Source: Macrostomum lignano
Taxonomy: Eukaryota
DNA length: 64,000 bases
Assembly: GCA_002269645.1 (NCBI GenBank)
Contig: NIVC01002518.1
Span: 1-64,000, forward strand
Direction: 5' to 3'
Numbering within the stretch: position 1 is the first letter of the stretch; each line of letters opens with the position of its first letter. Positions 10,718 through 63,912 of this stretch are shown here, in pieces. Position numbers and translations under genes: made by a program. A model generated the notes under the pieces. The model had not been told where the DNA came from and ran no database searches. It was given only the letters and a program-made list of their open reading frames with translations.

Positions 10718-10873
10718 CTTAGAGATTTAGTATATTGTGATTGCAGTCTCTAGAGCGTTATGGACATTCATTCATTCAAGCATACAAACCTTAGAGATTT
10801 AGTATATTTAGATAGAAGATTTAGAAGATAGAAGAAGATTAGAAGATTAGATTAGATAGAAGATAGATTTAGA

Positions 10874-11311
10874 CTAGCAATCTACGCCCCCCGTTGGGGA
10901 GCCAAAGAAATGCAATACACGTTTTTTTAATAAGCTACATGTATCCTTGAAATCTTAAAAAATCTCCTGTCAAACCTTGTAAGCCTTGACATGTCAGTTA
11001 TCCCCCCCCACAAGCTTTAACATATCAACTCCCCCCCTTGACATCTCAGCAATGCCCCAATAAGCCTTGGAAATCTAAAAATATTTGTCAACCTTCTAAC
11101 CCTAACCCTAGCCTAACCCTAACCCTAACCCTAACCCTAAAGCATTGAAATTTCAGTAATTCTCTCTAAGAGTCATTATAGCACTACTACAGCATTACAG
11201 GGGCGTAGCCAGAGGGGGGCAAGGGGGGCCGTGGCCCCCCCATAATCACCAACTCTGGCCTTGGCGCCCCCCCCTAAAAGAATATAGACATCACATTTTT
11301 AGTATATAGGA
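10874..11311 (-). mobile_element. Short chimeric Helitron-like unit D (438 bp)
   Basis: Hairpin + CTAG at 10874; unit-A-type 5' end TCCTATATACTAAAAATG at 11311; contains degenerate 30-bp repeats and (CCCTAA)n. Confidence 0.7.
11096..11140. repeat. Interstitial telomere-like (CCCTAA)n, ~7 copies
   Basis: ctaaccctaaccctagcctaaccctaaccctaaccctaaccctaa. Confidence 0.8.
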
Positions 11312-11320
11312 TTAGATAGA

Positions 11321-12871
11321 CTAGCTAATTAGAGCTGGCTGCCAGCATCCAGAATAATTTTTATTGCCCCCCTTTAAGTGGGGTCCAGTGAGTTTTCTTA
11401 TCAGTTGGCTCTGGCGCAATCAATTAAAATTGGCAGTGAAGTTTCTCGCTGATAAAATTTGCATTGAAAAAGGCCATTTAAAACAGTTTTTCGAATATTT
11501 AATCCCTTTAGCATTAAAGCAGATACAAGAAATTTTAACTGTCTTCTTTCCAGACAATTTTGAATATTTTGGCGAAAACGCGATGAAAATCGGTGAAGAA
11601 TTGCAATCTCTAGAGCGTTATGGACATTCAAGCATACAAACCTTAGAGATTTAGTATATTTAGAAGATAGACTAGCTAATTAGAGCTGGCTGCCAGCATC
11701 CAGAATAATTTTTATTGCCCCCCTTTAAGTGGAGCGGAGTGAGTTTTCTTATCAGTTGGCTCTGGCGCAATCAATTAAAATTGGCAGTGAAGTTTCTGGC
11801 TGATAAAATTTGCATTGAAAAAGGCCATTTAAAACAGTTTTTCGAATATTTAATCCCTTTAGCATTGGAGCAGATTAAAGAATTTTAACTGTCTTCTTTC
11901 CAGACAATTTTGAATCTTTTGGCGAAAACGCGATCAAAATCGGTGAAGAATTGCAATCTCTAGAGCGTTATGGACATACAAACCTTAGAGATTTAGTATA
12001 TTTATTTAGTATATTTAGATAGAGATTTAGTATATTTAGATTACTAGAGCGTTATGGACAAACATACAAACAAACAAACCTTAGAGATTTAGTATATTTA
12101 GATTTACTAGCTAATTAGAGCTGGCTGCCAGCATCCAGAATAATTTTTATTGCCCCCCCCTTTAAGTGGGGCCCAGTGAGTTTTCTTATCAGTTGGCTCT
12201 GGCGCAATCAATTAAAATTGACTGTGAAGTTTCTCGCTGATAAAATTTGCATTGAAAAAGGTCATTTAAAACAGTTTTTCGAATATTTAATCCCTTAAGC
12301 ATTGAAGCAGATACAAGGAATTTTAACCATACAATCCCAGGCTGATTACAAATCTTTTGGCGAAAACGCGATCAAAATCGGTGAAGAATTGCAATCTCTA
12401 GAGCGTTATGGACATACAAACCTTAGAGATTTAGTATATTTATAGAGATTTAGTATATTTAGATTACTAGAGCGTTATGGACAAACATACAAACAAACAA
12501 ACCTTAGAGATTTAGTATATTTAGATTTACTAGCTAATTAGAGCTGGCTGCCAGCATCCAGAATAATTTTTATTGCCCCCCCCTTTAAGTGGGGCCCAGT
12601 GAGTTTTCTTATCAGTTGGCTCTGGCGCAATCAATTAAAATTGACTGTGAAGTTTCTCGCTGATAAAATTTGCATTGAAAAAGGCCATTTAAAACAGTTT
12701 TTCGAATATTTAATCCCTTTAGCATTGAAGCAGATACAAGAAATTTTAACTGTCTTCTTTCCAGACAATTTTGAATCTTTTGGCGAAAACGCGATGAAAA
12801 TCGGTGAAGAATTGCAATCTGTAGAGCGTTATGGACAAGCATACAAACCTTAGAGAATTAGTATATTTAGA
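11321..12871 (-). mobile_element. Four tandem ~345-bp mini-Helitrons (3' CTAG at 11321, 11672, 12107, 12530)
   Basis: Each has a GCTGGCAGCCAGC hairpin ~9 nt before CTAG and the TCTAAATATACTAAATCTC 5' end; copies are nearly identical and separated by 5'-end fragments. Confidence 0.85.
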
Positions 12872-12899
12872 AGATAGAATAAGATTTAGTATATTTAGA

Positions 12900-15800
12900 C
12901 TAGCAATTTAAGCCCCCCGTTGGGGGACGCAAGAATGACGCCAAATGGTTTTTATTTTGGCCTATGAGTAATAACCTTACCCCCAGTAAGCCTTGACATC
13001 TCAGTGATTCCCCCAGTAAGCCTTGACATCTCAGCAATTCCCCCAAATAAGCCTTAACAACTCAGCAATTCTCCCCAAGCCTTGACATCCCAGCAATTCC
13101 CCCAAATAAGCCTTGACAATTCAACAATTCCCCCAGTAGGCCTTGACAACTCAACAATTCTTCCAGTTGCAATGAATCAAAACCTTCACCAGCCAAAGTT
13201 TCCTTCATCAGCCCAAAAGCCTTTCTCATTCAGCAAATAGTACTTATCCTTTCAAGCACAAACTCTTAGTGCATATCGTCATTGGCCTGGGCGTATTCTG
13301 GTCCACACCAGGAGCTCAATATGCCATAAGCCTTGATGACATCTCATTAATTTCCCCAGTAAGCCATGACATCTCAGAAATTCCCTTAGTAGGCCTTGAC
13401 AACTCAGCAATTCCCCCAAGTAAGCTTTGACATCTCAGAAATTCTTTTAGTAGGCCTTGACATCTCAGCAATTCCCTTAGTAAGCGTTGAAATCTCAGAA
13501 ATTCCATTAGTAAGCCTTGAAATATTAGCAATTCCCCCAGTAAGCCTTGAAGTCTCAGCAATTCCCCCAGTAAGCCTTGGAATCTCAGCGATTCCCCCAG
13601 TAATCCTTGACAACTCAGCAATTCCCCCAGTTGCCATAAATCAAAACCTTCACCAGCCAAAGTTTCCTTCAAAACCCTTCCAAAACCCTTTCTCAATCAG
13701 CAAATAGTACTTATCCTTTCAAGCACAAACTCTTTGGGCATATCGTCATTGGCCTGGGCATATTCTGGTCCGCAGCAGGAGCTCAATATGCCATAAGCCT
13801 TGATGACATCTCATTAATTTCCCCAGTAAGCCTTGACATCTCAGCAATTCCCCCAGTAAACCTTGACAATTCAGCAATTCCCCAGTAAGTCTCGAATCTC
13901 AGTAATTCTTCCAGTAAGTCTCGAATCTCAGTAATTCCCCAGTAAGTCTCGAATCTCAGTAATTCCTCCAGTAAGTCTTGAAGTCTAAGCAATTCCCCCA
14001 GTAAGCCTTGACATCTCAGCAATTCCCCCAGTAAGCCTTGACATCTCAGCAATTCCCCCAGCAAGCCTTGACATCTCAGCAATTCCCCCCCAGCAAGCCT
14101 TGAAATCTCAGCAATTCCCCGAGTAAGCCTTGAAATCTCAGAAATTCCCCCAGTAAGCCTTGAAGTCTCAGCGATTTCCCCAAGTAAGCCTTGACATCTC
14201 AGCAATTCCCCCAGTAAACCTTGACAATTCAGCAATTCCCCCAGTAAGCCTTGACAACTCAACAATTCCCCCAGTTGCCATGAATCAAAACCTTCATCAG
14301 CCAAAGTTTCCTTCATCAGCCCAAAACCCTTTCTCATTCAGCAAATAGTACTTATCCTTTCAAGCACAAACTCTTAGTGCATATCGTCATTGGCCTGGGC
14401 GTATTCTGGTCTGCAGCAGGAGCTCAATATGCCATAAGCCTTGATGACATCTCAGCAATTCCCCCAGTAAGCCTTGACATCTCAGCAATTCCCCCAGTAA
14501 GCCTTGACATCTCAGCAATTCCCCGAGTAAGCCTTGAAATCTCAGAAATTCCATTAGTAAGCCTTGAAATATAGCAATTCCCCCAGTAAGCCTTGAAGTC
14601 TCAGCAATTCCCCCAGTAAGCCTTGGAATCTCAGCGATTCCCCCAGTAATCCTTGACAACTCAGCAATTCCCCCAGTTGCCATAAATCAAAACCTTCACC
14701 AGCCAAAGTTTCCTTCAAAACCCTTCCAAAACCCTTTCTCAATCAGCAAATAGTACTTATCCTTTCAAGCACAAACTCTTTGGGCATATCGTCATTGGCC
14801 TGGGCATATTCTGGTCCGCAGCAGGAGCTCAATATGCCATAAGCCTTGATGACATCTCATTAATTTCCCCAGTAAGCCTTGACATCTCAGCAATTCCCCC
14901 AGTAAACCTTGACAATTCAGCAATTCCCCAGTAAGTCTCGAATCTCAGTAATTCTTCCAGTAAGTCTCGAATCTCAGTAATTCCCCAGTAAGTCTCGAAT
15001 CTCAGTAATTCCTCCAGTAAGTCTTGAAGTCTAAGCAATTCCCCCAGTAAGCCTTGACATCTCAGCAATTCCTCCTAGTAAGCCTTGACATCTCAGCGAT
15101 TCCCCCCAGCAAGCCTTGACATCTCAGCAATTCCCCCCAGCAAGCCTTGAAATCTCAGCAATTCCCCGAGTAAGCCTTGAAATCTCAGAAATTCCCCCAG
15201 TAAGCCTTGAAGTCTCAGCGATTTCCCCAAGTAAGCCTTGACATCTCAGTGATTCCCCCAGTAAGCCTTGAAATCTCAGCAATACCCTCAGTAAGCCTTG
15301 ACATCTCAGTAATTCCCCCCAGTAAGCCTTGACATCTCAGCAATTCCTCCTAGTAAGCCTTGACATCTCAGCAATTCCCCCCAGCAAGCCTTGAAATCTC
15401 AGCAATTCCCCGATTAAGCCTTGAAATCTCAGCAATTCCCCCAGTAAGCCTTGACAACTCAGCACTTCCCCCCAGTAAGCGTTGACATTTCGGCAATTCC
15501 CCCAGTTAGCCTTGACATCTCAGCAATTCCCCAGTAAGCCTTGACATCTCAGTAATTCCCCCAGTTAGCCTTGACATCTCAGCTATTCCCCCAGTTAGCC
15601 TTGACATCTCAGTAATTCCCCCAGTTAGCCTTGACATCTCAGTAATTCCCCCAGTTAGTTTTGACATCTCAGAATTCCCCCAGTAAGCCTTGAAATCTCG
15701 GAAATTCCCCCAATTAGCCTTGAAGTCGCAGCAATTCCCCCAAGTAAGCCTTGACATCTCAGCAATTCCTCCTAGTAAGCCTTGACATCTCAGCAATTCC

Positions 15801-17852
15801 CCCAGCAAGCCTTGAAATCTCAGCAATTCCCGAGTAAGCCTTGACATCTCAGCAATTCCCCGCAGCAAGCCTTGAAGTCGCAGCAATTCCCCAAGTAAGC
15901 CTTGACATCTCAGCAATTCCTCCTAGTAAGCCTTGACATCTCAGCAATTCCCCCCAGCAAGCCTTGAAATCTCAGCAATTCCCCGAGTAAGCCTTGACAT
16001 CTCAACAATTCCCCGCAGCAAGCCTTGAAATCTCAGCAATTCCCCCAAATAAGCCTTAACAACTCAGCAATTCTCCCCAAGCCTTGACATCCCAGCAATT
16101 CCCCCAGTAAGCCTTGACATCTCAGCAATCCCCCAGTAAGCCTTGAAATCTCAGAAATTCCCCCAGTAAGCCTTGAAGTCGCAGCAATTCCCCCAGTAAG
16201 CCTTGACATCTCAGCAATTCCTCCTAGTAAGCCTTGACATCTCAGCAATTCCCCCCAGCAAGCCTTGAAATCTCAGCAATTCCCCGAGTAAGCCTTGACA
16301 TCTCAGCAATTCCCCGCAGCAAGCCTTGAAGTCGCAGCAATTCCCCCAAGTAAGCCTTGACATCTCAGCAATTCCTCCTAGTAAGCCTTGACATCTCAGC
16401 AATTCCCCCCAGCAAGCCTTGAAATCTCAGCAATTCCCCGAGTAAGCCTTGACATCTCAGCAATTCCCCGCAGCAAGCCTTGAAATCTCAGCAATTCCCC
16501 CAAATAAGCCTTAACAACTCAGCAATTCTCCCCAAGCCTTGACATCCCAGCAATTCCCCCAGTAAGCCTTGACATCTCAGCAATCCCCCCAGTAAGCCTT
16601 GAAATCTCAGAAATTCCCCCAGTAAGCCTTGAAGTCGCAGCAATTCCCCCAGTAAGCCTTGACAACTCAGCACTTCCCCCCAGTAAGCGTTGACATTTCA
16701 GAAATTCCCCCAGTTAGCCTTGAAGTCGCAGCAATTCCCCCAGTAAGCCTTGACAACTCAGCACTTCCCCCCAGTAAGCGTTGACATTTCAGAAATTCCC
16801 CCAGTTAGCCTTGACATCTCAGCAATTCCCCCAGTTAGCCTTGACATCTCAGTAATTCCCCCAGTTAGCCTTGACATCTCAGAATTCCCCCAGTAAGCCT
16901 TGAAATCTCGGAAATTCCCCCAGTAAGCCTTGTCATCTCAGCAATTCCCCCAGTTACCATGAATCAAAACCTTCACTAAGCAGTCTGCAGTTATCCCCTC
17001 AACAAGTTGCACTCAATCATTCACAGTTATTATCCACTTAAACTCTGTAGATAGTTATCCCGGAAGTTTGCACCTATACACTCATAAGTCTGGAGGAACT
17101 ACCTCAGCAGTTTTTCGTTTTTCAACTTTGCAGTCTAAATGAATGATCCCTTTGACAATCTGCAGTTCTCCTCAGCAACCTGTGGTCATTCCATTTGCAG
17201 TCTACAACAATTCTCATTCTCAGCAGTCTGCAGTTTTCCTCTTTGCTGGCCCCTCAGTATTCTCAGGAAGCTACAGTGATGCTTTCAATAATGTAGAAAT
17301 TTACTCAGCATTGTACGGCTCACTATATAATCAATTTTCGATAGATATTGGCAGTCTTTTGCACATCAATGCAACGAAGATTTTGCATCGTCTGCAATTT
17401 AGCGATTAGTCCAGGCAGGTACAAGCTACAAATAAATGAAAATTTTATTTCATTTTATCTTATCTCCTACGTGCATAAACTGAAGCTTGCGAATATTTAA
17501 TTATTTATAGCTCGCAGCATCAGCTCAAGAAGTTAAAGTTTAGTCTATGGCCATAGACGTATTATTATTTTTCGAGCTCTCACTGCGAGAAAAATACACT
17601 AATTAGATAGGGAAAATACAGTTTTTTGAATATTTAAGACCTTTAGAATTGAAGCAGATAAAAGAGATGTTAACCATACAATCCTTGGTTGAGTAGCAAC
17701 TGTTTGGTGAAAACGCGATCGAAATTGGTCAAGAATTGCAGTCTGTAGAGCGTTTTACACGGACAGACAGACAGACATAGATTAGAGATTTAGTATATAA
17801 GAAGAAGACAAGCAAGCAAGCATACAAATATTAGAGATTTAGTATATTTAGA
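12900..17852 (-). mobile_element. Helitron-like unit I with an expanded 30-bp satellite
   Basis: Hairpin + CTAG at 12900; stacked 5' ends at 17802 and 17852. Confidence 0.8.
12980..16960. repeat. 30-bp satellite arrays interspersed with a ~170-bp spacer module (higher-order repeat)
   Basis: 30-bp period; module gccatgaatcaaaaccttc...ggagctcaatatgcc at ~13170, 13630, 14277 and 14678. Confidence 0.95.
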
Positions 17853-17861
17853 AGAAGAAGA

Positions 17862-23559: not shown

Positions 23560-26252
23560 CTAGCAATTTAAGCCCCCGTTGGGGGGCGCAAAAATGACGC
23601 AAGTGGTTTTTATTTTGGCCAATGAGTAATAACCTTACTTATTATTCAAAATCCAATCAAAACTTACTTTTTCAAATTTTTGGCAAAAATAAATTGCCAT
23701 GAATCAAAACCTTCACCAGCCAAAGTTTCCTTCATCAGCCCAAAACCCTTTCTCATTCAGCAAATAGTACTTATCCTTTCAAGCACAAACTCTTAGTGCA
23801 TATCGTCATTGGCCTGGGCATATTCTGGTCCGCAGCAGGAGCTCAATATGCCATAAGCCTTGATAACATCTCAATAATTTCCCCAGTAAGCTTTGTCATC
23901 GCAGAAATCCCCCCAGTAAGCCTTGATATCGCAGCAATTCCCTCAATAAGCCTTGACATCGCAGCAACGCAAAGGCGAGCCTTGGCATCAACGCAATTCT
24001 CCCAGCCCAGTAAGCCTTGACATCTCAGAAATTTCCCCAGTAAGCCTCGAAATCGCAGCAATTACCCCGGTAAGCCTTGACATCTCAGAAATTTCCCCAG
24101 TAAGCCTCGACATCGCAGCAATTACCCCATTAAGCCTTGAAATCTCAGAAATCCCCCCAGTAAGCCTTGACATCTCAGCAATTCCCCAGTAAGCCTTGAC
24201 ATATCAGTAATTCCCCCCAGTAAGCCTTGACATCTCAGCAATTCCCCCAGTAAGCCTTGAAATCTTATAAATTCCCCCAGTAAGCCTTGAAGTCTCAGTA
24301 ATTCCCTCAGTAAGCCTTGACATCTCAGTAATTCCCCAGTAAGTCTCGAATCTCAGTAATTCCCCAGTAAGTCTCGAATCTCAGTAATTCCTCCAGTAAG
24401 TCTTGACATCTCACAATTCCCCCAGTAGGCCCTGAAATCTCAGCAATTCCCCCCAAGTAAGCCTTGATATCTCAGTAATTCCCCCAGTAAGCCTTAACAT
24501 CTCAGCAATTCCCCCATTAAGCCTTGAAATCTCAGAAATTCACCCAGTAAGCCTTGGCATCTCAGTAATTCCCCCAGTAAGCCTAGAAATCTCAGCAATT
24601 CCCCCAGTAAGCCTTGACATTTCAGCAATTCCCCCAGTTAGCCTTGACCTCTCAGTAATTCCCCCAGTAAGCCTAGAAATCTCAGCAATTCCCCCAGTAA
24701 GCCTTGACATTTCAGCAATTCCCCAAGTTAGCCTTGACCTCTCAGCAATTCCCCCAGTAAGCCTTGACATCTCAGCAATTCCCCCAGTAAGCCTTGAAAT
24801 CTTATAAATTCCCCCAGTAAGCCTTGAAGTCTCAGTAATTCCCCCAGTAAGCCTTGACAACTCAGCAATTCCCTCAGTAAGCCTTGACATCTCAGTAATT
24901 CCCCAGTAAGTCTCGAATCTCAGTAATTCCCCAGTAAGTCTCGAATCTCAGTAATTCCTCCAGTAAGTCTTGACATCTCACAATTCCCCCAGTAGGCCCT
25001 GAAATCTCAGCAATTCCCCCCAAGTAAGCCTTGATATCTCAGTAATTCCCCCAGTAAGCCTTAACATCTCAGCAATTCCCCCATTAAGCCTTGAAATCTC
25101 AGCAATTCCCCCAGTAAGCCTTGACATTTCAGCAATTCCCCCAGTTAGCCTTGACCTCTCAGTAATTCCCCCAGTAAGCCTAGAAATCTCAGCAATTCCC
25201 CCAGTAAGCCTTGACATTTCAGCAATTCCCCAAGTTAGCCTTGACCTCTCAGCAATTCCCCCAGTAAGCCTTGACATCTCAGCAATTCCCCCAGTAAGCC
25301 TTGACATCTCAGCAATTCCCCCAGTAAGCCTTGACCTCTCAGCAATTCCCCCAGTAAGCCTCGACATCGCAGCAATTACCCCATTAAGCCTTGAAATCTC
25401 AGAAATCCCCCCAGTAAGCCTTGACATTGCAGCAATTAAACTCGAGCCTCGGCATCTACGCAATTCTCCCAGTCCAGTAAGCCTCGAGATCGCAGCAATT
25501 ACCCCAGTAAGCCTTGACATCTCAGCAATTCCCCCAGTAAGCCTTGAAATCTCAGCAATTCCCCCCACCCCCAGTAAGCCTTGACATCTCAGTAATTTCC
25601 TCAGTAAGCCTTGACATCTCAGTATTTCCCCCAGTAAGCCTTGACATCTCAGCAATTCCTCCCAGTTAGCCTTTGGCTGGTGAAGGTTTTGATTCATGGC
25701 AATTTATTTTTGCCAAAAATGAGAAAAAGTAAGTTTTGATTAATGAATTTTGAATAATAAGTAAGGTTATTACTCATTGGCCAAAATAAAAACCACTTGG
25801 CGTCATTCTTGCGTCCCCCAACGGGGGCTTAAATTGCTAGTAGTTGCTTTTAATCAAAAAATGTTCGATTAGTCCAGGCACAAGCTAAAAATAAATGAAA
25901 ATTAAAAATTTAATATATTTTTATCTCCCACGTGCATACTCTGAAGCTTGCGAATAATTTAATTATTTATAGCTCGTAGCATCAGCTCAAGAAGTTAAAG
26001 TTTAGTCTATGGCCATAGACGTATTATTATTTTTCGAGCTCTCACTGCGAGAAAAATACACTAATTAGATAGGGAAAATACAGTTTTTTGAATATTTAAG
26101 ACCTTTAGAAGTGAAGCAGATAAAAGAAATTTTGAACCATACAATCCTTGGCTGAGTTGCAATTTTTTGGTGAAAACGCTATCAAAATTGGTCAAGAATT
26201 GCAGTCTGTGGAGCGTTTTACACGGACATAGATTAGAGATTTAGTATATATA
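23560..26252 (-). mobile_element. Helitron-like unit L with an internal inverted copy of its own 3' end (25673-25840); 30-bp array 23860-25670
   Basis: Hairpin + CTAG at 23560; a plus-strand cccccaacggggg-cttaaattg-CTAG|T ends at 25840. Confidence 0.8.
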
Positions 26253-29200: not shown

Positions 29201-29381
29201 CCTTGGTTGAGTTGCAACTTTTTGGTGAAAACGCGATCGAAATTGGTCATGAATTGCAGTCTGTAGAGCGTTTTACACGGACAGACAGACAGACATAGAT
29301 TAGAGATTTAGTATATAGAAGATTATGGACAAGCAAGCAAGCAAGCAAGCATACAAATATTAGAGATTTAGTATATTTAGA
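26253..29381 (-). mobile_element. Helitron-like unit M; 30-bp arrays 26330-28065
   Basis: Hairpin + CTAG at 26253; stacked 5' ends at 29319 and 29381. Confidence 0.8.
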
Positions 29382-29393
29382 AGATTAGATAGA

Positions 29394-32300
29394 CTAGCCA
29401 TTTAGCCCCCCGCTGGGGAGCCATAAAATGAAACCAATTGGTTTTTATTTTGACCCAAGAGTAACCTTACTATAATTATCCAAAATGTTGATTTCCATTA
29501 TTCAAAAATTACCTTTTCTCATTTTAGCAAAAATAAATCGCCATGAATCAGAACTTTCATCAGCCATAGTTTCCTTCATCAGCCCAAAACCCTTTCTCAA
29601 TCAGCAAATAGTGCTGATCCTTTCAAGCACAAACTCTTAGTGCATATCGTCGCTGGCCGGGGCATATTCTTATCCGCAGCAAATATGCAAATGATTGACG
29701 GCCTTAGACCCTCTCTCTTAATTAGCCTAAATCAAAGAATGAAACCTTAAATAAATGCGCTGGTATTTCCTATTAGCAGAAATCAGCATCACTTGTGTGT
29801 ACTATTTCACTATCTGAATTACATGAGCTACTTCAGCCGTACTACCTGACTATCTGACAATCGCCCAACAACCTAACACCCCCAACAATTCAGCCATCGT
29901 CCATGAGCCTTGTCATCTTAGCAATTCCCCCAGTAAGCCTTGACATATCAGCAATTCCCCCCAGTAAGTCTTGACATCTCAGCAATTCCCCCAGTAAGCC
30001 TTGAAATCTCAGCAATTACCCCCCGTAAGCCTTGACAAAAATTGCTAAGAATTGCTAAGAATATGCAACTTAGCTAACAATTGCTAATACTTGCTAAGAA
30101 TTGCTGAGAAGCCTTGAGATCTCAGCAATTCCCCCAGTAAGCATTGACATCTCAGTGATTCTCCCAGTAAGCCTTGAAATATTAGCGATTCCCCCACAAA
30201 GACTTCACATCTTAGCAATTGCCGCAGTAAGCCTTGAAATCTCTGCAATTCCCCCAGTAAGCCTTAACATCTCAGCAATTCCCCAATAAGCCTTGACATC
30301 TGAGGAATCCCCCAGTAAGCCTTGAAATCTAAGCATTTCCCCAGTAAGCCTTGAAATCTCAGCATTCCCCAGAAAGCCTTCACATTTTAGCAATTCCCAG
30401 TAAAACTTGACATCTTAGCAATTCCCAGTAAGACTTGACATCTCAGCAGTTCCCCCATTAAGCATCGAAATCGCAGCAATTAAACTCGAGCCTTGACATC
30501 TACGCAGTTCTCTCAGCTGAGTAAGCCTTGACATCCCAACAACCCAACTCCCCTCCCCCAAGAATTCAGCAATCCCCTTATGAGCCTTGATACCTCAGCA
30601 ATTTCTTCATAAGCCTTGTCAACTCAGCGATTCCATTCATGAGCTTTGATATCTTAGCAACTCCCATCTTAGCAAGTCTTTAGTTGATGGTTAACAGAGT
30701 GGTTATTCTATGATTGAACCAAAACTGACCCTAAGCCCCTAACCCTAACCCATAAGTGAGTCTTGGCATGTTAGCAATCTCCCCCGTGAGCCTTGAGCCT
30801 GAGCATTTAAGTAACTTCCTCATAAGCTTTGAAATATAAATTTCACCGAAAGCCTTGAACTGTCAGCAATTCCCGAAGAGCCAAAGCATATAACTAATTC
30901 GCCCCAAGAGCCTTTAATCTTAGAAATTCCTTAATGAATCATTTATGATTGACACGACGATCGCTCTAATTAAACTCAAACCCTAACCCTTAACCTGCAG
31001 CCGAGTCACAGCATTTCAGCAACTCCCTCTCTCAGCCCAAGAATTTCAGCAATTCCCCAATGAGCTTTTGAAATCTTAGCAATTTTCCCATGAGCATGAA
31101 ACTTTAGCGACTAACCTTTTGATATCTTGGCACTTTCACATGAGTCTTATGGCTGAAAACTAACCCTGCCAAGTCACAGCATTTCAACAAATACCCAATG
31201 AACCTTGACATTTCCTGAATTTCAGCTATTCGCTTTAGGAGCCTTTGAAATCTCAGTCATTCCCCCGTGAATCTTAGCATCTCAGCAATACCCAAGAGTC
31301 ACAGCCTACAGCATTACAGGGATCCCCCGTGAGCTTTGAAATCTCAGCTATTCCCCAATGAGCCTTGATATCTCAGCAACTCCTATTTGAGCCACAAAAT
31401 TTCGGCAATATGAGCAGGTACTGCAATCACAACAATCCCCCTGAGCATTGAGCCACATTATAATTCGGATATCCCCCCCAAGAGCCTTTACAACTTAGCA
31501 ATTCCCCAATGAGTATTTAATGTTAGACAGGCCTATTTATTTATATGGTTTACGTCTTACTCTTACCCTAACATTGTCGGCAATTCCCTCAAGAGCCACA
31601 GCATTCCAGAAATTATTTCCATGAGCCTTGACAGCAAATAATTTTAATGAGCCTTGATACCTCAGAAAATTCTCAAATGAAATTTGTAATCAAAGCAATT
31701 CTGCCTAGAATCACATCAGTATAGGAATTTCCCTCTGAGACTTGACAAGACATCTCAGAATTTCTCTCATGGGCCTTGATCTGGCCCATGGCCCAGTAAG
31801 CCTTGAAATCTCAATAATTCCCCAGTAAGCCTTGACATCTCAGAAATTCCCTCATTAAGATCGACATCGCAGCAATTGAACTCAAGCTTTGAAATCAAAG
31901 CAATTCTCCCCAGAATCACATCATTATAGCAATTACCGCTGAGCCTTGAGATCTTAGAAATTCTCCCATGAGTCTTGATATCACAGAAATTTTCCATACC
32001 AGCCTTGACATCTTAGCAATTCACATTGAGTATTTTATTCTCGACAGACCGCTTCTTTTATGGTTGACATGATGATTCTTTTGTCGCTTTTTCTTGTGTT
32101 GAGTTTTCTTCTGTTTAAAGTAGCATTTATTAAAAACTTACAGTGGTTTACCATCACTTTAGCAATGGTTTACCATCACTTTAGCGATGGTTCACCAGCA
32201 GTTTAGCAATGGTTCACCAGCAGTTTAGCAATGGTTCACCAGCAGTTTAGCAATGATTCACCAGCAGTTTAGCAATGGTTCACCGGCACTGTTCCGCAAA

Positions 32301-34631: not shown

Positions 34632-34707
34632 TTAGAAGAAGACTAGAGCGTTATGGACAAGCAAGCAAGCAAGCATACAAACCTTAGAGATTTAGTATAT
34701 TTAGATT

Positions 34708-34898
34708 TGTAAGACCAGAATTGCGAGAAAATCAGTACGAGGGCTCAAAGGCCAAGTTAGTCGATATATATATTTGTCATTCACTATGTACGCGCGTACA
34801 TTTCGATCGATATAGGTTCAGGTGAATAAAAGCGTGCCCAACCCCCCAGCGCAGGCCAACCCCCAAAACAGCCAACACAACGAACACCAAAACTCACA
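34708..34898 (-). repeat. 3' LTR (191 bp)
   Basis: tgtaagacc...aaaactcaca; matches 39485-39675. Confidence 0.97.
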
Positions 34899-34911
34899 CC
34901 ACTTTCCCCCC
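34899..34911 (-). promoter_or_regulatory. Polypurine tract
   Basis: GGGGGGAAAGTGG immediately upstream of the 3' LTR on the minus strand. Confidence 0.85.
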
Positions 34912-34955
34912 AAGCACGAGGAATAAAACTCTATGGCAAAAGTTCAAAAAAAGGT

Positions 34956-37900
34956 TCACTCAGGGCGATAAAAATCAGGAGGCCTCCGCTGTCGTACCGA
35001 ACGTCTTAGCGCTGGTGGGACGACCGGGTCGATTGCTGCTTCGGTGTCACCGTCGTCATCGTCATTGCCGCCTGACAGCTGAGCCCAGGCGTCAGGCACA
35101 CCCAGCTGCTCAGGACTGGTGCTGGTAGCCGGAGCCGGCTGCTGCTCATCGGTCAGTTGCAGAGAGCCGCGCCGCTTCACGAATGGCTTGAGGCGGTCAT
35201 GGTGCACCACGAGCTTGCGACGCCGCCGAACCGCTAGGCCAGGTGCCAGCCGCACTCGATAGTTGACCTCACCCAGCCGCTTGAGAACGACGTAGGGCCC
35301 CGTCCAGCGGTTGCTGAGGCTCTTGGAGCGACCAGGCTTCACCGTCTTGCAGCTTAGCATGACCAGATCGCCTTGGTTGTAGGGCTGAAACCGCACGTCC
35401 TTGTTGTATCGTTCGTTTCTATCAGTCTGCGCGCTCTGAAGCTTCTGGTGGACGAGCCTCCGACTCTGCAAAAGCCGTTTCTGAACATCCTCGACGTACT
35501 CCAGAGTATCCGAAGCGCCGCTGTTGGTGTGCGGCAGCTTGACATCAAGCGGCAGTCTTGGTGGCCAACCGTGTAGCACTTGAAACGGAGACAGACCAGT
35601 CGTACAGTGCGCAGAGCTGTTGAATGCCCATGTGACAAAAGGCAGCTGTACATCCCAGTCGTCCTGGCTTTCCGCTACGACCGTCGCCAACATGTTACCG
35701 AGAGTGCGGTTTCCGCGCTCCACCAGGCCGTTGCCACTCGGATGAAACGGGGAAGTTCGAGTCTTCCGCATACCGAGCTGCTCACACAGAGACTGAAACA
35801 GCTGGCTCTCAAATTGCCGGCCCTGGTCACTGTGAATCGTGTCCGGAACTCCGTGACGTAGGGCTACTTGATGGACCAGAACATCAGCAACTCGCTCGGC
35901 TTCGATACTTGGTAGAGCACGGGTTTCCATCCATTTGGAGAAGCAGTCGCAGATGCTCAGAATGTAGCTGTTGTCTCGAGGCGTCCTTGGCAACGGCCCC
36001 TTAATGTCGATTTGCACGGTCTCCCACGGTCGCGCCGGCTGTGCTGTACTCTGCAGTGGAGCTCGCTGAGGGCGACTATTGTTCTTGCGCCGAAGGCATG
36101 CTGCACAGCTGGCCACCCAGTTCTGGACATCCTGCTGCATTTTTGGCCACCAGCAGCGCTCACGCAACTTCTGTAGTGTTCTGTCCGCGCCGAGGTGACC
36201 GCTAGCGGCTGCATCGTGGGCGTCGGCCAGGAACTCGGCTCGCAGATGGCTCGGAACGACCGGCTTTCCTTGCCTGACCAGCGCGCCATGCGGTCCGATC
36301 TCAATTCCGTCATCGCCCAAGAACTCCTCGACCTTCTGCTGACCGCTGTTGGACAGGTGCTCGCGTCCCTCGGTGAGCGCCTTGAAGACACTCTGCAGAA
36401 GCGCATCGCGCTGCTGTTCCTCTAGGAAGTCTTGATCCCTGCTGCTGTCGAGCTGAGTGGTGGCGGTTCGACTCAACATGTCCGGGACGACATTCTCTCG
36501 ACCAGGCCGATAGCAGAGCGTGAAGTTGAACTGCTGAATCGTGTCAAGCCAGCGCGCCAGACGCCCTTCAGGTTCCTTAGTCTGTAGCAGGCCCTTCAGT
36601 GGCTGATGATCGGTGAACGCGGTGAAGTGCTTTACGTTACACAGGTATGACCTGAAATGTTTTAGGCTCCAGACTAAGGCGAGCAGTTCTCTGTCGGTAG
36701 CTGAGTAGTTCCTTTCTGCCTTATTCAGAGTTCTTGAGGCAAAAGCGACTGGCAGTTCCGAATCTCCGTGTGCCTGACTGAGAACCGCGCCGACTGCAAA
36801 TGCGCTTGCATCGCAACTCAGGATGAAGGGCCGGCTAAAATCTGGGAGTCTAAGCACGGGAGCCTGGCAGATCATTTCCCTTAGTTTGGTGAAAGCGCTC
36901 TCACACTCATCCGTCCAGGTGAAGCCGGTCTTTTGCGTTGCTGCATGCAGAGGCGCGGCTATCCTGCTGAAGTCTTGGATGAATCGCCGGTAAAATCCAA
37001 GCATGCCGATGAATCGCCTCACTTCCTCAGCTGAACTCAGCGTCTTAATCTTCGATAAAGCTTCCACCTTACTGGGGTCTGGCTGAATTCCCTCGCTGCT
37101 GACCACATGGCCCAGGTACTTGACACTACGGTACGCAAACACGGACTTATCCTTGTTCAGTTTCAGACCAGCGCTTCGAAGCCGTTCAAAAACCCGTCGT
37201 AGGCTGACTAGATGCTGATCAAAGCTCTTACTGAACAATATTAGATCATCCACGTAGACCAGGACCTCCTCCCATGTGAGGCCAGACATGATCAGCTCCA
37301 TTAGTCGTTGGAACGTAGCCGGCGAGTTGCACATTCCAAATCCCATTTTCTTGAACTGCATGAGTCCTCTGGTAGAGTAAAACGCCGTCTTGTAGCGGTC
37401 GGCTTCCTCAACTTCCACTTGATTGAAACCCTGCTTGCAATCGATTGTCGTGAACCAAGAGCAGCCTGAGAGCGCGTCCATGGACTGTTGTAGGTGTGGG
37501 AGCGGATAGGCGTCCTTTACCGTAGCGGCATTCAGCTGGCGCCAGTCAGTGCAGATGCGGATGTCTCCGTTCTTTTTCTTGACCACGATCAAATTGCTGG
37601 CCCATGGAGAGCTAGACGGCTCAATGATGTCGTGCGCAAGCATCTGGCCAATCTTGTCGTCGACTCGGTCTCTCAGCGGCAGGGGGAGCGGGCGCTGGCG
37701 CTGCCTGAATGGCCGTGCTCCGGGCTCGAGCTCGATGTGGTGCTTTAGTACGCTTGTGGAGCCGAGGTCAAACTCGTGAGTGCTGAACAGGTCGTCGTTG
37801 GCTTTCAAGATGGTCATCAGCTTGTCTCTTTCTAGCTCTGTCAGTTCGGGGTTCACGTCCCAGTTCTTCAGTTTCTCCTTCACGTTCCCAACCGGTTCGA

Positions 37901-38620
37901 GTACATCAGCAGCTTCGAATTCACCGACTGCTTTGTTGGCATACAGTGTTACTGCCTCGGATCCCAGATTGCACATGAGAACGGGAATCCTCTGATCGGC
38001 GGACAAGGCGAGAACTCGGGATGCCAGCAGACCGGTCTCTTGCGTAAACTCCGCATTCGGCTCGAAAACGCCCTGCTCATCTTTTGACTTCACTCGCAGC
38101 CAGACCAGCTTCTCACTCCTGGCGGGGACGTTGATGTTGCACTCAATGCGGGCCACCAGGGTCCCGGTCACCATTTGAATTTTTGAGCTGTTGGTGAAAA
38201 ACGGCACGGCCTCATCATTAAAGAAGACAGTCTTGTTGTTGATGTTAATCCGTAGCTCGTTGGTTGCCCGACCGATAAAGTCCATCCCTAGGATAAGGTC
38301 TACGCTTATTCCCTCTACGACGTTGAATACATGGTCCAATCGAGTCGTCTCTCCAACTTGAACTGTTCCCCGGGCTGTTCCGAGGCACTGCAGGCGACTA
38401 CCGTCTACTGACGTTGGACAGCAGCTGCTCCCGGACTCGAGCTGCAGGCCGCATGACCGCATGAGGCTGTGGCTGATGAGGGATGTCTGCGCACCAGTGT
38501 CGAGCAGGAAGCAGACCGGCTTTTCTTGCAGCAGGGCACGCACAAAAACAGAATGAGCAGTCTGGGCACTTACTTGGCGGGTTGGGGCTGGCCCGTCGCC
38601 TCCAACCCTCAGAAGTTTCC
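34956..38620 (-). CDS. pol: Pol polyprotein (aspartic protease, RT, RNase H, integrase), in the -1 frame relative to gag
   Basis: LLDTGA protease, YVDD RT, RNase H (CDASAFAVG...RELLA), HHCC, DIKGP/DQGRQF/VERGN integrase and GPY motif; the frame stays open upstream of the track start (38543) to the gag slippery site. Confidence 0.97.
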
Positions 38621-38621
38621 C
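38579..38621 (-). promoter_or_regulatory. Putative -1 programmed ribosomal frameshift signal
   Basis: G GGA AAC heptamer (38621-38615), 6-nt spacer TTCTGA, then hairpin GGGTTGG-A-GGC/GCC-CCAACCC (38608-38579); pol is in the -1 frame. Confidence 0.8.
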
Positions 38622-39445
38622 GCCGGCCGGGCTTTACTTGGGCAGACCGCTGCATTGTGGCCCCAACCGGAGCAGTTGAAGCACCGACCTTGCTTGTGGG
38701 CACCTTTAGTTGGACATCTGCGCGCGATGTGACCGTCTTTGCCGCACTGGTAGCAACCGGATGTTCTCTGGGCCTGCCGACGGTCACCTGGTCCAGCGCG
38801 GCCTCCTCTAGCGGCGCCGCTTGTCACGGCAGCTGTCAGTGTCTCCAGCTGCTGCTCGAGTCGGGACAGCCGGTCGTCAACCACGGAGACCATAGACGAA
38901 CTTGCGGGCGTGTTCTTGCTCATCACCTGCTCTAGTCTGGTGGCTCTCTCGACCAGCGTGCCCAGCGTGCATGTATCCGAGTCGCTCTCCTTGAGCAGGG
39001 CTTCGCGTATCCCTGCGCTTAATAGCTGGATAATTCTAAACTTGACCTCCCGATCACGGAGCGTTGATGGGTCATCCGGGCGGGCTCCCATGTACAGCAG
39101 CCTGAGAGCGAATGAGAGCTCCCTGATTGACTCGCCATTCTTGCGTTGTCGACCTTGGAACTCCTGCATGGCGCGGTGCTGATTGGCAGAGCCGCCGTAC
39201 TGCTGGAGAAGAAGTGCCTTGATTTTCTCATAACTCTTTTTATCGGCATCTGACATGTCCCAAACACAGACCTGGGCCTCCCCTCTCAGCAGGAGCTTCA
39301 CTTTGGAGGCACGCTTTGCATCGTCCCAATTCTTGTCTTCGGCGAAGTCTTCAAAGATGCTCAGCCAAAAGTGCACGTTTGATTGGCCACTAAACTTGGG
39401 CGGTAGCAAACTGGCGTCGTTGCTCTTCTCATCTCGCTCTTCCAT
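38609..39445 (-). CDS. gag: Gag (278 aa from the first ATG) with two CCHC zinc knuckles
   Basis: CYQCGKDGHIARRC and CFNCSGWGHNAAVC; located between the PBS and pol. Confidence 0.93.
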   Translation of the reverse strand: MEERDEKSNDASLLPPKFSGQSNVHFWLSIFEDFAEDKNWDDAKRASKVKLLLRGEAQVCVWDMSDADKKSYEKIKALLLQQYGGSANQHRAMQEFQGRQRKNGESIRELSFALRLLYMGARPDDPSTLRDREVKFRIIQLLSAGIREALLKESDSDTCTLGTLVERATRLEQVMSKNTPASSSMVSVVDDRLSRLEQQLETLTAAVTSGAARGGRAGPGDRRQAQRTSGCYQCGKDGHIARRCPTKGAHKQGRCFNCSGWGHNAAVCPSKARPAGNF

Positions 39446-39472
39446 TCTGATCTGCCAACTTGAATTGGGCTT

Positions 39473-39483
39473 CGCTGCCACCA
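39473..39483 (-). promoter_or_regulatory. Primer-binding site, tRNA-Leu type
   Basis: TGGTGGCAGCG lies 1 nt after the 5' LTR and is complementary to the ...CGCTGCCACCA 3' end of eukaryotic tRNA-Leu(AAG/TAG). Confidence 0.85.
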
Positions 39484-39484
39484 G

Positions 39485-39675
39485 TGTAAGACCAGAATTG
39501 CGAGAAAATCAGTACGAGGGCTCAAAGGCCAAGTTAGTCGATATATATATTTGTCATTCACTATGTACGCGCGTACATTTCGATCGATATAGGTTCAGGT
39601 GAATAAAAGCGTGCCCAACCCCCCAGCGCAGGCCAACCCCCAAAACAGCCAACACAACGAACACCAAAACTCACA
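39485..39675 (-). repeat. 5' LTR (191 bp)
   Basis: Matches 34708-34898. Confidence 0.97.
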
Positions 39676-40008
39676 GATTAGAAGATTTAGTATATTTAGA
39701 TTATGGACAAACATACAAACAAACCTTAGAGATTTAGTATATTTAGATTTTAACCATACAATCCTGGGCTGATTACAAATCTTTTGGCGAAAACGCGATA
39801 AAAATCGGTGAAGAATTGCAATCTCTAGAGCGTTATGGACAAGCAAGCATACAAATATTAGAGATTTAGTATATTTAGAAGATTAGATAGAAGATAGAAG
39901 ATGAGTAAAATATGAAAGAGATCCATATAAAAGATAAAATGGGCTACACATTAAGTCTGATGTAACTTCGTTTTGAGCGCGCAGGATGGCCAGGTGGATG
40001 GATGCGCT

Positions 40009-40128
40009 CTCTGGTGTCCTCTGGTGTCCTCTGGTGTCCTCTGGTGTCCTCTGGTGTCCTCTGGTGTCCTCTGGTGTCCTCTGGTGTCCTCTGGTGTCCT
40101 CTGGTGTCCTCTGGTGTCCTCTGGTGTC
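40009..40128. repeat. 10-bp tandem repeat (ctggtgtcct) x12
   Basis: Perfect periodicity. Confidence 0.97.
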
Positions 40129-40194: not shown

Positions 40195-41192
40195 TTAAGC
40201 AATGAAGGCTCTGAGGCTGGCTAAGATGCCGGCGCCACATTTCGGACAGCTGGCCCTGTGCGACAAGCAACCTGTGCACAGCAGGAAGTGGGCACACGGC
40301 AGGGTCACGTGGGAGCGGCGCGCGGACTGGCAGGAGACGCATTGGTCTGATGACGCGACCTCAGCGGAGCTGGCTGCCTTGGAGCTGCAGCTGTCGGTGG
40401 CTGGTGAGTTATTTTGCTCCTGCAACTGCTGCTGCTGCTGCTGCTGCTGCAGCGGACTGGGAGCCTGCGACCTGGCCGGCAGTGCTGCTGCTGCTGCCGA
40501 CAACATCGGCGTCTCCAGCTGTTGTTCGTCGCGCGGCTGGCAAGCCTCAGTCAGAGCCAGCTCGATGTCAATCACGGCGTCGCTGTGCAGCAGAGCGTCC
40601 AGTGTGGCTTCGGACTGGTGCAGCAGCTGGATGATGTCTCCCGGCCGGCTGCCGCTGAGCACCCTGCCGTCCCGGCTGCGCATGAACTCCCGGCACACCG
40701 CGAAGGCAACCTGGCGACGGTCGAAGCCGTAGGAGGTCACGTGACCCAGCAGCTCGGAGCGGACGAAGAAGTCTTTGAACAGTTTGGCGCAGGCCCGGCG
40801 CAGCTTTGCAGCGTCTTCGACGGGCACCGCGCCGCTGTCGGCCGCCTGCAGGAGGCGCGCGAGCTGGCAAGCCGGGCTGCTGCTCAGGTGCAGCCGCAGG
40901 GCATCCGCAGCGGCGTCAGGCAGCTGCTGACAGCGAAGGCCGCAGTGGAAGCAGGTCGCCAATAGTTTGCCTTTGTTCCGAACGTCCTCGTCGTCAGCAG
41001 CCTGAAAGTAAAATCCGGCATCGCTCCAGCCGGCTGCTTGCGTCTGGTCTCTGTTCTCAGAGTCTTTGTTGCTGTTATTGTTGTGGTCTCTGCCGCAGTT
41101 GCGGCTCTCGTCGAGCAGCAGAGAGCGAATTCGAGTTTGAGACGCCAGAAACTCCGGGTGCCGAGCGGCGGTGGCCACGAATATCAAACAGC
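40195..41192 (-). CDS. IAP-like protein, main exon: divergent BIR, UBA-like segment, C-terminal IAP-type RING
   Basis: AGFYF...CFHC-x17-H-x6-C (BIR-like); YGF motif (UBA-like); C-x2-C-x11-C-x-H-x3-C-x2-C-x6-C-x2-C RING; the ORF has no ATG but has an acceptor ttaccgttag at 41193. Confidence 0.85.
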
Positions 41193-41620
41193 CTAACGGT
41201 AAATTTGTAATTAGCGGTAATAAGATTGGATTGTATTGTGTGAAGTACTATACAGTGTACATTGAAAACCGCCACTACAGAGACTGGCAGAGTGATTGAT
41301 TTCAGCTCACTATCACTGCAAATGACGTCAAGTTTTCCAACTCGCTCTGCGCACTGCGTCTTTGATGGCGATTGTCAACGTACGCTACGCTACTATTGTG
41401 CAATTCTGTGATTACTACTGTAAATAGTAGTATTGGGCTATTTCTCGACCTATCAAATTGGATCTTAGAATTGTACATCATCGCACGGTGGCAGGGTGGA
41501 ACCGGCAGCGCACTGCGACAGTCAGTCAAGCTCGGGGCCACGCTGCTCTGCAAGATGCAGGTGCGGTGGGCACCTTAATAATCTATTGGCAGGGAAACAA
41601 GCTCAGCAATGGAGACTTAC

Positions 41621-41795
41621 ATAGGCAGTAGACCATCGCCTCAGCGCTTTGGCGACTAAACCGATCGAGTTTGGCAGCTGAACTTCCGCTGAACATCACG
41701 GACGCCAGCTGAGCAGCTGCTGAGCCGCATTTGCGGCTGAAACTCCCCAGCTGCTGCTGATGATGCTGGCTGGAATGGCTGGCTGTGCTAAACAT
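41621..41795 (-). CDS. Probable first coding exon of the IAP-like gene
   Basis: ATG at 41795 and GTAAGT donor after 41621 in phase 1, matching the phase-1 acceptor at 41192 (T|GC = Cys). Confidence 0.65.
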
Positions 41796-46921: not shown

Positions 46922-46991
46922 ATGGCCCACCAGGACAGAGAAGATCAGGTTTACTTCGCAAAATTGTCTGAGCAGGCTGAGCGCTATGATG
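46922..46991 (+). CDS. YWHAE: 14-3-3 epsilon-like, exon 1
   Basis: MAHQDREDQVYFAKLSEQAERYD + G|GTATGT, phase 1, matching exon 2. Confidence 0.92.
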
Positions 46992-48885: not shown

Positions 48886-49103
48886 CTAGGGACACGGTGG
48901 CCATGCCTCTAACTCTATGTCTAAGGACATGGCCGCCATGTCCCTAGCTACCACGCTACTCTGTGCCTAGAGCCACGGCGGCTGTGTCTTTAGCTGTGTG
49001 GACTCGCGGCACAGCCGCTGTGTCCCTAGCTCTGTGTATAGGGACATGGCGGCCGTGTTCCTAGTAATCTACCACTCACATGCCTAGGGGCACGGCGGTT
49101 GTC
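48886..49103. repeat. Degenerate array of ~6 27-bp palindromic units (CTAGGGACAYGG-N3-CCRTGTCCCTAG) in 14-3-3 intron 1
   Basis: Example: CTAAGGACATGG-CCG-CCATGTCCCTAG at 48921-48947; spacers are about 8-19 nt. Confidence 0.7.
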
Positions 49104-50604: not shown

Positions 50605-51258
50605 AGATGGTGGACGCCATGAAGGCCGTCGCCGTGATGGACGTGGAGCTGACGGTGGAGGAGCGCAACCTGCTGTCCGTGGCCTACAAGAACGTCATCG
50701 GCGCCCGCCGGGCCTCCTGGCGCATCATGAGCAGCATCGAGCAGAAGGAGGAAAGCAAGCCGGGCTCCGACAAAGTCGAATTGGTGAAGAAATACCGCAG
50801 CCAAGTTGAGAAGGAGCTCAAGCAGATCTGCGAGGACATTCTGGACGTGCTGGACAGCCACCTGATCCCCAGCGCCACCGTGGACGAGTCCCGGGTGTTC
50901 TTCTACAAGATGAAGGGCGACTACCTGCGCTACATGGCCGAGTTCGCCACCGGCGCCGAGCGCAAGGAGGCCGCCGAGAACAGCCTGTCGGCCTACAAGA
51001 ACGCCACGGACATCGCCAACGCCCACCTGCCGCCCACGCATCCCATCCGGCTGGGCCTGGCTCTCAACTTCTCCGTGTTCTATTATGAGATTCTCAACTC
51101 GGCTGAGAGGGCCTGCCAGCTGGCCAAGACCTCCTTTGACGAGGCCATCGCCGAGCTGGACACTCTGTCCGAGGAGTCCTACAAGGACAGCACCCTGATC
51201 ATGCAGCTGCTGCGTGACAACCTCACTCTGTGGACCTCCGACATGCAGACTGGGGACG
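50605..51258 (+). CDS. YWHAE: 14-3-3 epsilon-like, exon 2
   Basis: [71 protein letters not shown]; tgcag acceptor and GTGAGT donor. Confidence 0.97.

Positions 51259-56750: not shown

Positions 56751-56962
<212 letters not shown>

Positions 56963-58207: not shown

Positions 58208-63912
<5,705 letters not shown>

Follow-up and report, generated by a model that had tools for sequence, protein, structure and literature searches.

Nested prefixes of a Helitron 5′ terminus at the junctions of a head-to-tail array in Macrostomum lignano

Can the first few bases of a transposon be written into a genome again and again, in pieces of different length that begin at the same nucleotide, and if so, by what process? 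The question is raised by a 64,000-nt stretch of the Macrostomum lignano genome (PacBio contig NIVC01002518.1:1-64000, assembly GCA_002269645.1; hereafter, the window), which contains an array of Helitrons whose relevant features all lie on the minus strand. Between ...GATTGCTAG and TCTAAATATACTAAATCTC, at 10813-10873 (-), we found a 61-nt junction fill that parsed completely into 15 nested prefixes of the Helitron 5′ terminus, specifically TCTAAA, TCTA, TCT, TCTA, TCTAA, TCTAA, TCT, TCTAA, TCT, TCT, TCTA, TCT, TCTAAA, TCT, and TCTA (unit lengths 6, 4, 3, 4, 5, 5, 3, 5, 3, 3, 4, 3, 6, 3, and 4). A sequence-only reading of the window had described this spacer as made up wholly of such pieces, and the parse was indeed exact for 15 of 15 units and all 61 nt. 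As a single strand, the fill was unstructured.

The array and its filled junctions

The Helitron array occupies 2300-34631 (-), at the start of the contig, and comprises at least 17 heterogeneous units placed head-to-tail in the same orientation. Prefix-only pieces, interrupted by a Ty3/gypsy element, prolong it to 39.9 kb, and the host flank at 39902 reads ...ACTCA|. Units ranged in size from 344 bp to ~5 kb, with the large ones being 2.6-5 kb, and came from several subfamilies. Full units opened with TCTAAATATACTAAATCTC... or the variants TCCTATATAC, TCTTATATAC, TCTATATAC, and TCACAATATAC. A 5′ TC was present at most units (TCTAAATATAC, TCCTATATAC, TCTTATATAC, TCACAATATAC), and two units opened with TATATATAC, without TC. 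The 14-mer ATATACTAAATCTC had 21 mismatch-free occurrences on the minus strand. CTAG was found at 14 of 14 array 3′ ends (29394, 26253, 23560, 20928, 17862, 12900, 12530, 12107, 11672, 11321, 10874, 8365, 4712, and 2326; 13 by scan, with 8365 read separately), and was preceded at a distance of 12-13 nt by a hairpin, either GCTGGC-A-GCCAGC or C5-N4-G5/6. Hairpin energies were -4.3 to -5.4 kcal/mol, values that at this short length did not differ significantly from those of shuffles. As a reference we used a 344-bp non-autonomous Helitron at 11321-11664 (-), with 5′ TCTAAATATAC..., the GCTGGC-A-GCCAGC hairpin, and 3′ ...TAATTAGCTAG. The unit upstream of the 61-nt fill (10874-11311 (-), terminus TCCTATATAC) abuts the fill with a 3′ end (10874-10899 (-)) composed of a short GC hairpin, ~12 nt, and CTAG. 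It lies between ...TCTAA| and |TCT, flanked 5′ by TCTA TCTAA and 3′ by the 61-nt fill.

By sequence definition, the array elements are canonical, non-autonomous Helitrons. Helentron and HINE elements (DINE-1-like) insert between T and T, carry subterminal inverted repeats, and lack 5′-TC...CTRR-3′ ends. Judged on ends and flanks only, the array elements are not members of that group, as their ends are TC...CTAG and their flanks A and T. A rolling-circle concatemer of one element, in which near-identical units would be precisely joined, was also rejected, since the unit sizes, the subfamilies, and the presence of fill at half of the junctions do not fit it. The four short (344-bp) units were mutually 92-98% identical and were mosaic, in that the block at ~100-125 and the 3′ variants were common to different combinations of units (window 11672-12871, -), a pattern indicative of active recombination or template switching among array neighbours.

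Several further observations concern the elements themselves. The large units hold long satellites of 30-bp (AGCCTTGACATCTCAGCAATTCCCCCAGTA) and 22-bp repeats, and the GC skew of the region is strongly negative. Telomere-type TTAGGG repeats, together with G- and C-runs, are present in Helitron units at 11096-11140 and 30737-30748 (-). Inside one large unit, a Helitron 3′ end in the opposite orientation (C5-AACG-G5...CTAG|T; 25815-25840 (+)) is followed by T and then by non-Helitron sequence, with no fill. For control DNA, we used ten further M. lignano loci (232 kb) reached via retrotransposon proteins, which together with the window amounted to 295,553 bases; no copy of the array's Helitron family was present in these 232 kb. 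A metagenome scan for ATATACTAAATCTCTAA returned at least 120 stretches, and among the matches listed all were chance occurrences, judged by their flanks. A protein search with the open reading frame (ORF) of the internal 30-bp satellite gave no match to further copies.

Fill was present at 9 of the 17 junctions, the other eight being direct CTAG|T... joins. At 11312-11320 (-) and 11665-11671 (-), the fill parsed fully, as TCTA TCTAA and TCTA TCT, respectively. The fill at 17803-17861 (-) combines TCT x3 (17853-17861), a 44-nt prefix of the TAATATTTG subfamily, and TCT x2 (17803-17808), ahead of a unit opening with TCTTATATAC. Similarly, at 29320-29393 (-), TCTA TCTAA TCT (29382-29393), a 59-nt prefix ending in TCCATAA, and a final TCT (29320-29322) stand ahead of a unit opening with TCTATATAC. 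At 34632-34705 (-), a 63-nt prefix that ends in an internal CTCTAG is followed by TCT TCT TCTAA (34632-34642), with the full unit starting at 34631. The outermost fill, at 39676-39901 (-), runs from the host flank ...ACTCA through TCT TCTA TCT TCTA TCTAA TCT (39880-39901) to prefixes of 132, 47, and 18 nt and a terminal TCTAA, a unit that the gypsy element interrupts and that runs on into 34705. Finally, the fill at 12872-12899 (-) consists of an 18-nt prefix, the non-prefix triplet TAT, and TCTA TCT. The sequence-only reading had attributed the same pattern to all of these sites. Every one parsed as prefixes apart from 12872-12899, where TAT interrupts the series. Moreover, the pieces at 11312-11320 precede TCCTATATAC, of which they are not prefixes, and the final 2 nt of 39676-39901 are part of the unit split by the gypsy element.

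In total, 11 segments parsed fully and held 40 units, namely 20 TCT, 10 TCTA, eight TCTAA, and two TCTAAA. All 40 opened with TCT as base 1, and their A-runs never exceeded three, equal to the A count of the native terminus. Three related ends lie outside these junctions. A solitary Helitron-like 5′ end from another family, at 49187-49220 (+), reads caa|TCTAATATACTAAAACT TCTATACTAAAAAACCC and has no short-unit fill; it could consist of a 17-nt prefix and then another start. A related 5′ end at 42193 (-), aataa|TCCAAATATACTAAATAG, was likewise without fill. The sole related junction in the control loci (L125:19380-19400 (+)) was a precise, unfilled CTAG|TCCAATATACTAAAATG (CTAG|TCCAATATAC).

Besides the short units, 11 longer pieces of 15-132 nt began at base 1. 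The 132-nt (39879-39748), 47-nt (39747-39701), and 18-nt (39700-39683) prefixes belong to the outermost fill, and the 63-nt (34705-34643), 59-nt (29381-29323), 44-nt (17852-17809), and 18-nt (12899-12882) prefixes to the fills described above, all on the minus strand. A 72-nt prefix at 10812-10741 (-) ends in ...GAGACTGCAA and is followed by the terminus of another unit, TCACAATATAC. The remainder are located in two paralogous junctions near 12 kb. One (12005-12106 (-)) comprises TAAA, a 59-nt prefix ending in CTCTAG, TAA, and prefixes of 21 and 15 nt, the last at 12019-12005 (-). The other (12443-12529 (-)) comprises TAAA, the 59-nt prefix (12525-12467 (-), copy at 12102-12044), TAA, and the 21-nt prefix (12463-12443 (-), copy at 12040-12020), and thus equals the first minus the 15-nt TCTAAATATACTAAA. 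The longer prefixes noted from the sequence alone were real, with measured lengths of 15, 18, 18, 21, 44, 47, 59, 59, 63, 72, and 132 nt.

The two 12-kb junctions were 100% identical over 161 nt save for one 15-nt indel, TCTAAATATACTAAA, while the unit bodies beside them were only ~92% identical, which suggests gene conversion or a very recent change at the junction. That single clean difference indicates that a prefix-sized piece was gained or lost in one step. Since several pieces in these junctions (J12 and J13) go back to a single event by copying, the number of independent events is smaller than that of pieces.

The subfamilies of the long pieces (TAATATTTG, TAAGGTTTG, and differing states of an internal NNTG array) matched neither flanking unit consistently, and we infer from this that at least the long ones were templated by, or transferred from, other copies. 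Their ends were not random. TCT, CTA, TAA, or AAA ended 7 of the 11 (background 18 of 124 positions, P = 2.6e-4), and adding the two CTCTAG ends gave 9 of 11 (P = 1.9e-6), in an enrichment test that was post hoc, the 3-mer set having been chosen after the data were seen. Two independent long prefixes halt at an internal CTCTAG, which resembles the CTAG terminator. These end 3-mers fit either a cutting and joining preference of the enzyme, CTAG being its natural terminator, or microhomology of 3-5 nt.

Contrast with ordinary repeats and chance

The tetranucleotide repeat (TCTA)n is very common in this genome, where its tracts show striking regularity and can exceed 200 units, with examples in control loci L123 (4891-5195), L124 (4666-5216), L128 (~15100-16011), L129 (~15255-17413), and L130 (449-709). 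Within the 295,553 bases there were 17 tracts of at least 10 units, in which 997 of 999 units were 4 nt long; the tract at 56753-56944 (-) served as a control within the window. Neighbouring units were identical in 979 of 982 cases in ordinary (TCTA)n, but in only 6 of 29 in the fill, where 35% would be expected if units were independent. The 61-nt spacer was 13 edits away from the best pure repeat. With four mixed unit lengths, unlike neighbours, and this edit distance, an ordinary microsatellite, in which a single unit recurs and most flaws are substitutions or whole-unit changes, was ruled out.

The fill was also specific to the Helitron terminus. Mixed-length runs of at least four units away from the TCTAAATATAC terminus were absent from the window and 134 kb of M. 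lignano DNA, and a further 98 kb held regular (TCTA)n runs only. Across these 296 kb, then, non-Helitron loci did not carry the pattern equally often, in keeping with the sequence-only reading. Additionally, 240 other families of the form "trinucleotide plus 0-3 of one base" gave no comparable long heterogeneous run in 198 kb.

Against null models, the prefix grammar performed unevenly. Not one of 20,000 order-1 Markov shuffles of the spacer parsed, whereas an order-2 chain trained on the spacer parsed in 33% of cases, the grammar alone amounting to "TCT plus 0-3 A". The contention that the grammar sets the spacer apart from chance thus stood for the first model and not for the second. The parse alone is weak evidence, and the strength comes from location, unit diversity, the three-A cap, and the long prefixes. 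Each of the 183 possible substitutions in the 61-nt spacer broke the grammar, and few deletions (16 of 61) or insertions (23 of 248) left it intact. Random unanchored tandem duplications of 3-6 nt preserved it in ~15-25% of cases, and at a naive junction, 4 of 44 such duplications yielded a prefix unit.

The elements also supply an internal contrast. At positions ~24-45 of the 5′ region, between two conserved blocks, lies a hypervariable NNTG array (TTTG, TATG, CTTG, AATG, TCTG) that differs in almost every copy (e.g., 10765-10790, 12480-12505, 29330-29360, -). Judged from these copies, it grows by runs of like units, as in normal slippage, and in this it is unlike the fill.

Origin of the fill

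The anatomy, anchoring, and length spectrum of the fill, its specificity for the terminus, and its difference from microsatellites are demonstrated above; the steps of the chemistry proposed here we infer. We consider the fill to be a mutational scar of repeated nick-site use at the Helitron 5′ end, the left terminal sequence (LTS), a reading to which we assign a probability of roughly one half. Base 1 corresponds to the site cleaved by the Helitron transposase RepHel in work on Helraiser (PMC4778049, PMC5876387). RepHel would nick N|TC and remain covalently attached to the 5′ T. The 3′-OH of the flank would then be extended, re-copying the first k bases of an LTS, with k usually 3-6 and rarely 15-130, after which a RepHel-held 5′-TC end, from the same element or another family member, would be joined behind the extended 3′ end. 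The product would be flank + prefix(k) + TCTAAAT..., and repeated cycles would stack prefixes upstream of a functional terminus. A covalently blocked 5′ flap would withstand normal flap removal. The longer pieces could reflect prolonged synthesis, in-trans joining, or an early stop where a cryptic end such as the internal CTAG is met. Because each A|TCT in the fill would mimic a nick or target site, new Helitron insertions could follow, and the array could grow in the same orientation; the position of unit 10874-11311 inside fill, at an A|T step, indicates that fill also serves as a target.

Several features accord with nick-site use. The frequency of pieces drops with length (20, 10, 8, and 2 for the short units, then four of 15-21 nt, six of 44-72 nt, and one of 132 nt), a decay that fits aborted copying or small duplications and not deletion remnants. 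The array contained no 3′-anchored partial copies, and hence is asymmetric between 5′ and 3′ ends. Long pieces from other subfamilies fit strand transfer at a resident nick site better than purely local duplication. In Helraiser donors, the LTS is nicked, a fork is set up there, and resynthesis with repeated reuse follows, with aberrant junctions in ~50% of circles (PMC5876387).

A narrower version remains tentative, and we would not favour it on present data, namely that the fill preserves, like a fossil in the genome, RepHel reactions that aborted or ended wrongly, each comprising an LTS nick, strand-displacement synthesis of a few bases, and a RepHel-catalysed join of the held 5′ end to the extended 3′-OH, with the A|TCT ladder then seeding same-orientation arrays. 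Premature termination with re-insertion, or termination that overshoots into the next 5′ end, fits about as well as abortive initiation, and the abortive rolling-circle reading is plausible rather than proven. The sequence-only reading had proposed abortive initiation or strand transfer. Base-1 anchoring, terminus specificity, and the length spectrum support this in part, but they do not divide RepHel from a host polymerase or ligase.

Other routes were considered and rejected. Nested insertion, which would produce a prefix, a new element, and the remainder, does not account for the fill, as nothing resembling a remainder lies after the 3′ ends and the majority of prefixes stop elsewhere than at A|T. 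Deletion remnants are disfavoured, all pieces being at most 132 nt though elements are at least 344 nt. Overshoot on an element's own circle and local duplication both failed, with no consistent match between prefixes and the 5′ end of the upstream element in the first case, or the downstream element in the second.

A number of observations weigh against the nick-site reading. Anchoring at base 1, which had been claimed for all pieces, holds for the 40 short units and the 11 long ones but was overstated. The TAT at 12879-12881 is not a prefix, nor are the fillers after CTAG, TAAA at 12526-12529 (copy 12103-12106) and TAA at 12464-12466 (copy 12041-12043), and at 12424-12461 positions 3-21 are perfectly duplicated (19 nt), with anchoring at base 3. 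Likewise, fill 11312-11320 precedes a TCC-type terminus, so that TCTA and TCTAA are not prefixes of the end beside them. None of the 40 short units was of 1-2 nt, which the model leaves unexplained. Fill is lacking at eight of the 17 junctions and at two related-family 5′ ends that stand alone, 49187 (+) and 42193 (-). The combination of TCTA TCTAA TCT and the same subfamily recurs at 29393 and 39890, which suggests inheritance and thereby few independent events. The long prefixes are unlike both of their neighbours and cannot be explained by simple local re-copying, and their non-random ends are as predicted by microhomology-driven host template switching. Among the 15 ORFs of at least 150 aa in the window, none encoded a RepHel (HUH nuclease plus Pif1-like helicase). 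The evidence base is, moreover, one locus in one PacBio assembly.

Part of this evidence would be accommodated without any transposase, if slippage or microhomology-mediated template switching by the host, of the DNA polymerase theta (Pol theta) or microhomology-mediated break-induced replication (MMBIR) type, had acted among nearby LTS copies. A nascent 3′ end would re-anneal through 3-5 nt to a fill-unit end or to the CTAG upstream of another LTS. We regard such an origin, the main alternative, as possible but doubtful. It is in line with the enriched end 3-mers of the long prefixes and their derivation from other subfamilies, with the mosaic units, and with the slippage-prone NNTG arrays, the 19-nt duplication, and the (TA)n variation of the same elements; a templated patch, with TAA on either side and a source like 39880, might account for the 59-nt piece at 29381. 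Yet deriving TCT, TCTA, and TCTAA from TCTAAA requires changes in the A-run, and the runs of four or more A that would be expected were seen in 0 of 40 units. There is also no microhomology between CTAG and the first unit after it, slippage predicts runs of like units where 6 of 29 neighbours were alike, similar fill is absent from the rest of the 296 kb although microsatellites are very plentiful in this genome, and no pieces are 3′-anchored. A hybrid, in which RepHel nicks and a Pol theta-type host polymerase repairs, is compatible with everything seen.

That the fill was instead pre-existing low-complexity host DNA, preferred as a target through the likeness of A|TCT to the nick site, we judge improbable. 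The single orientation of all units, the abundance of (TCTA)n in this genome, and the insertion of unit 10874-11311 into existing fill at A|T speak for it, but host (TCTA)n is regular, with 4 nt in 997 of 999 units, no irregular tract was found without a Helitron, and the prefixes of 15-132 nt would be left unexplained. An artefact of PacBio assembly or consensus in low-complexity sequence is very improbable. Errors in A-run length are typical of PacBio reads and the evidence comes from a single assembly (GCA_002269645.1), but this assembly renders long (TCTA)n tracts with perfect regularity, the paralogous 161-nt junctions are identical save for a clean 15-nt indel, and the long prefixes are not homopolymer errors. 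We see equally little chance that reiterated LTS starts are a selected feature, acting as iterons or spare initiation sites that boost transposition. The element may have taken its fill along (three units plus the subfamily are common to 29393 and 39890), but number, order, and spacing are not conserved, half of the junctions lack fill, and many adjoining termini are defective.

Surrounding sequence and comparison with known systems

The Ty3/gypsy element at 34708-39675 (-) has identical 191-nt long terminal repeats, an AATC target duplication, and intact gag-like and pol ORFs, the latter (34956-38543 (-)) being 98% identical to BOX15_Mlig029272g4. It looks like a later, very recent insertion that split the prefix array and stands outside the phenomenon; its excision in silico rejoined the 18-nt prefix, TCTAA, and the 63-nt prefix. 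Beyond the array lie the RING-finger gene BOX15_Mlig002214g1 (40195-41795 (-)), with its 3′ end ~290 bp from the first fill, and a two-exon 14-3-3 gene (46922-51290 (+); predicted model 250 aa, annotated 252 aa). Minisatellites, many perfect or near-perfect, were located at 40009-40128, 55747-56286, 58339-58701, and 62453-63237, with units including a 10-mer x12 (100% identity), a 27-mer x20 (99%), and a 34-mer x10.7. A collagen-repeat ORF (Pfam PF01391, E = 3.8e-25) was also present.

To our knowledge, nearly all direct work on how Helitrons initiate, terminate, and reuse the donor site has relied on the reconstructed bat element Helraiser. If nick-site use is the correct reading, the fill would be a natural signature of failed or imprecise 5′-nick events, making transposase behaviour readable from genomes and offering a target for junction sequencing. 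It would further suggest that a Helitron end can prepare the site where later copies land and thereby seed long arrays of one orientation, on the way to satellite-like DNA.

Head-to-tail Helitrons are described from bat (Helibat), maize, and plant centromeres, and are attributed to consecutive insertion at a resident end or to rolling-circle concatemers (PMC2267711, PMC4778049, PMC5876387, PMC11934779). As in those arrays, the CTAG of one element here abuts the TC of the next and neighbours are heterogeneous; unlike them, with junctions described as precise, deleted, or aberrant, the junctions here are prefix-filled. In the Helitron literature searched, which was not exhaustive, we found no description of nested 5′ prefix fill. 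Helraiser stops early or late at the cryptic ends CTTG, CTAC, and AATG, with read-through in ~12% of events (PMC4778049). The two long prefixes that stop at internal CTAG are akin to its premature truncation, but those events yield entire transposed copies, each at a new site, rather than 5′ stubs of 3-130 nt stacked at a resident 5′ end. The termini resemble the TCTATACTAC-type ends of maize tabulated in PMC10095026. Where a Helitron has excised in maize, a (TA)n tract of variable length is reported to remain (Li and Dooner 2009, cited in PMC10095026 and PMC4683698). As related there, those footprints share with the fill a variable number of short repeats exactly at the Helitron end junction; they differ in that (TA)n comes from the host A|T at empty donor sites, whereas the fill is made of element prefixes at occupied sites.

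The host-repair explanation has its own parallel. Pol theta templated insertions and the filler of transferred DNA (T-DNA) consist of iterated short copies of break-adjacent sequence, and the T-DNA strand carries a relaxase covalently bound at its 5′ end. The end 3-mers of the long pieces fit microhomology of this kind, and overlap at right-hand junctions was only 0-2 nt. Unlike Pol theta inserts, which have varied starts and both orientations, nearly all pieces here have one start base and one orientation. Should host repair be the source, the array would be a clear natural case of iterated templated insertion at a fixed break point.

For nick-site use, bacterial plasmids offer a precedent. 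During pT181/pC221 replication, synthesis proceeds 9-12 nt past the nick and Rep retains a covalent 10-12 nt copy, giving Rep* (PMC4797284). The Rep* adduct thus also holds a nascent, nick-anchored prefix; unlike the Helitron case, it is bacterial, involves another Rep family, and inactivates Rep through the oligonucleotide, with re-ligation into DNA not known. If aborted or mis-terminated RepHel reactions did produce the fill, eukaryotes would have their equivalent of the pT181 Rep* oligonucleotide, recorded in the DNA itself.
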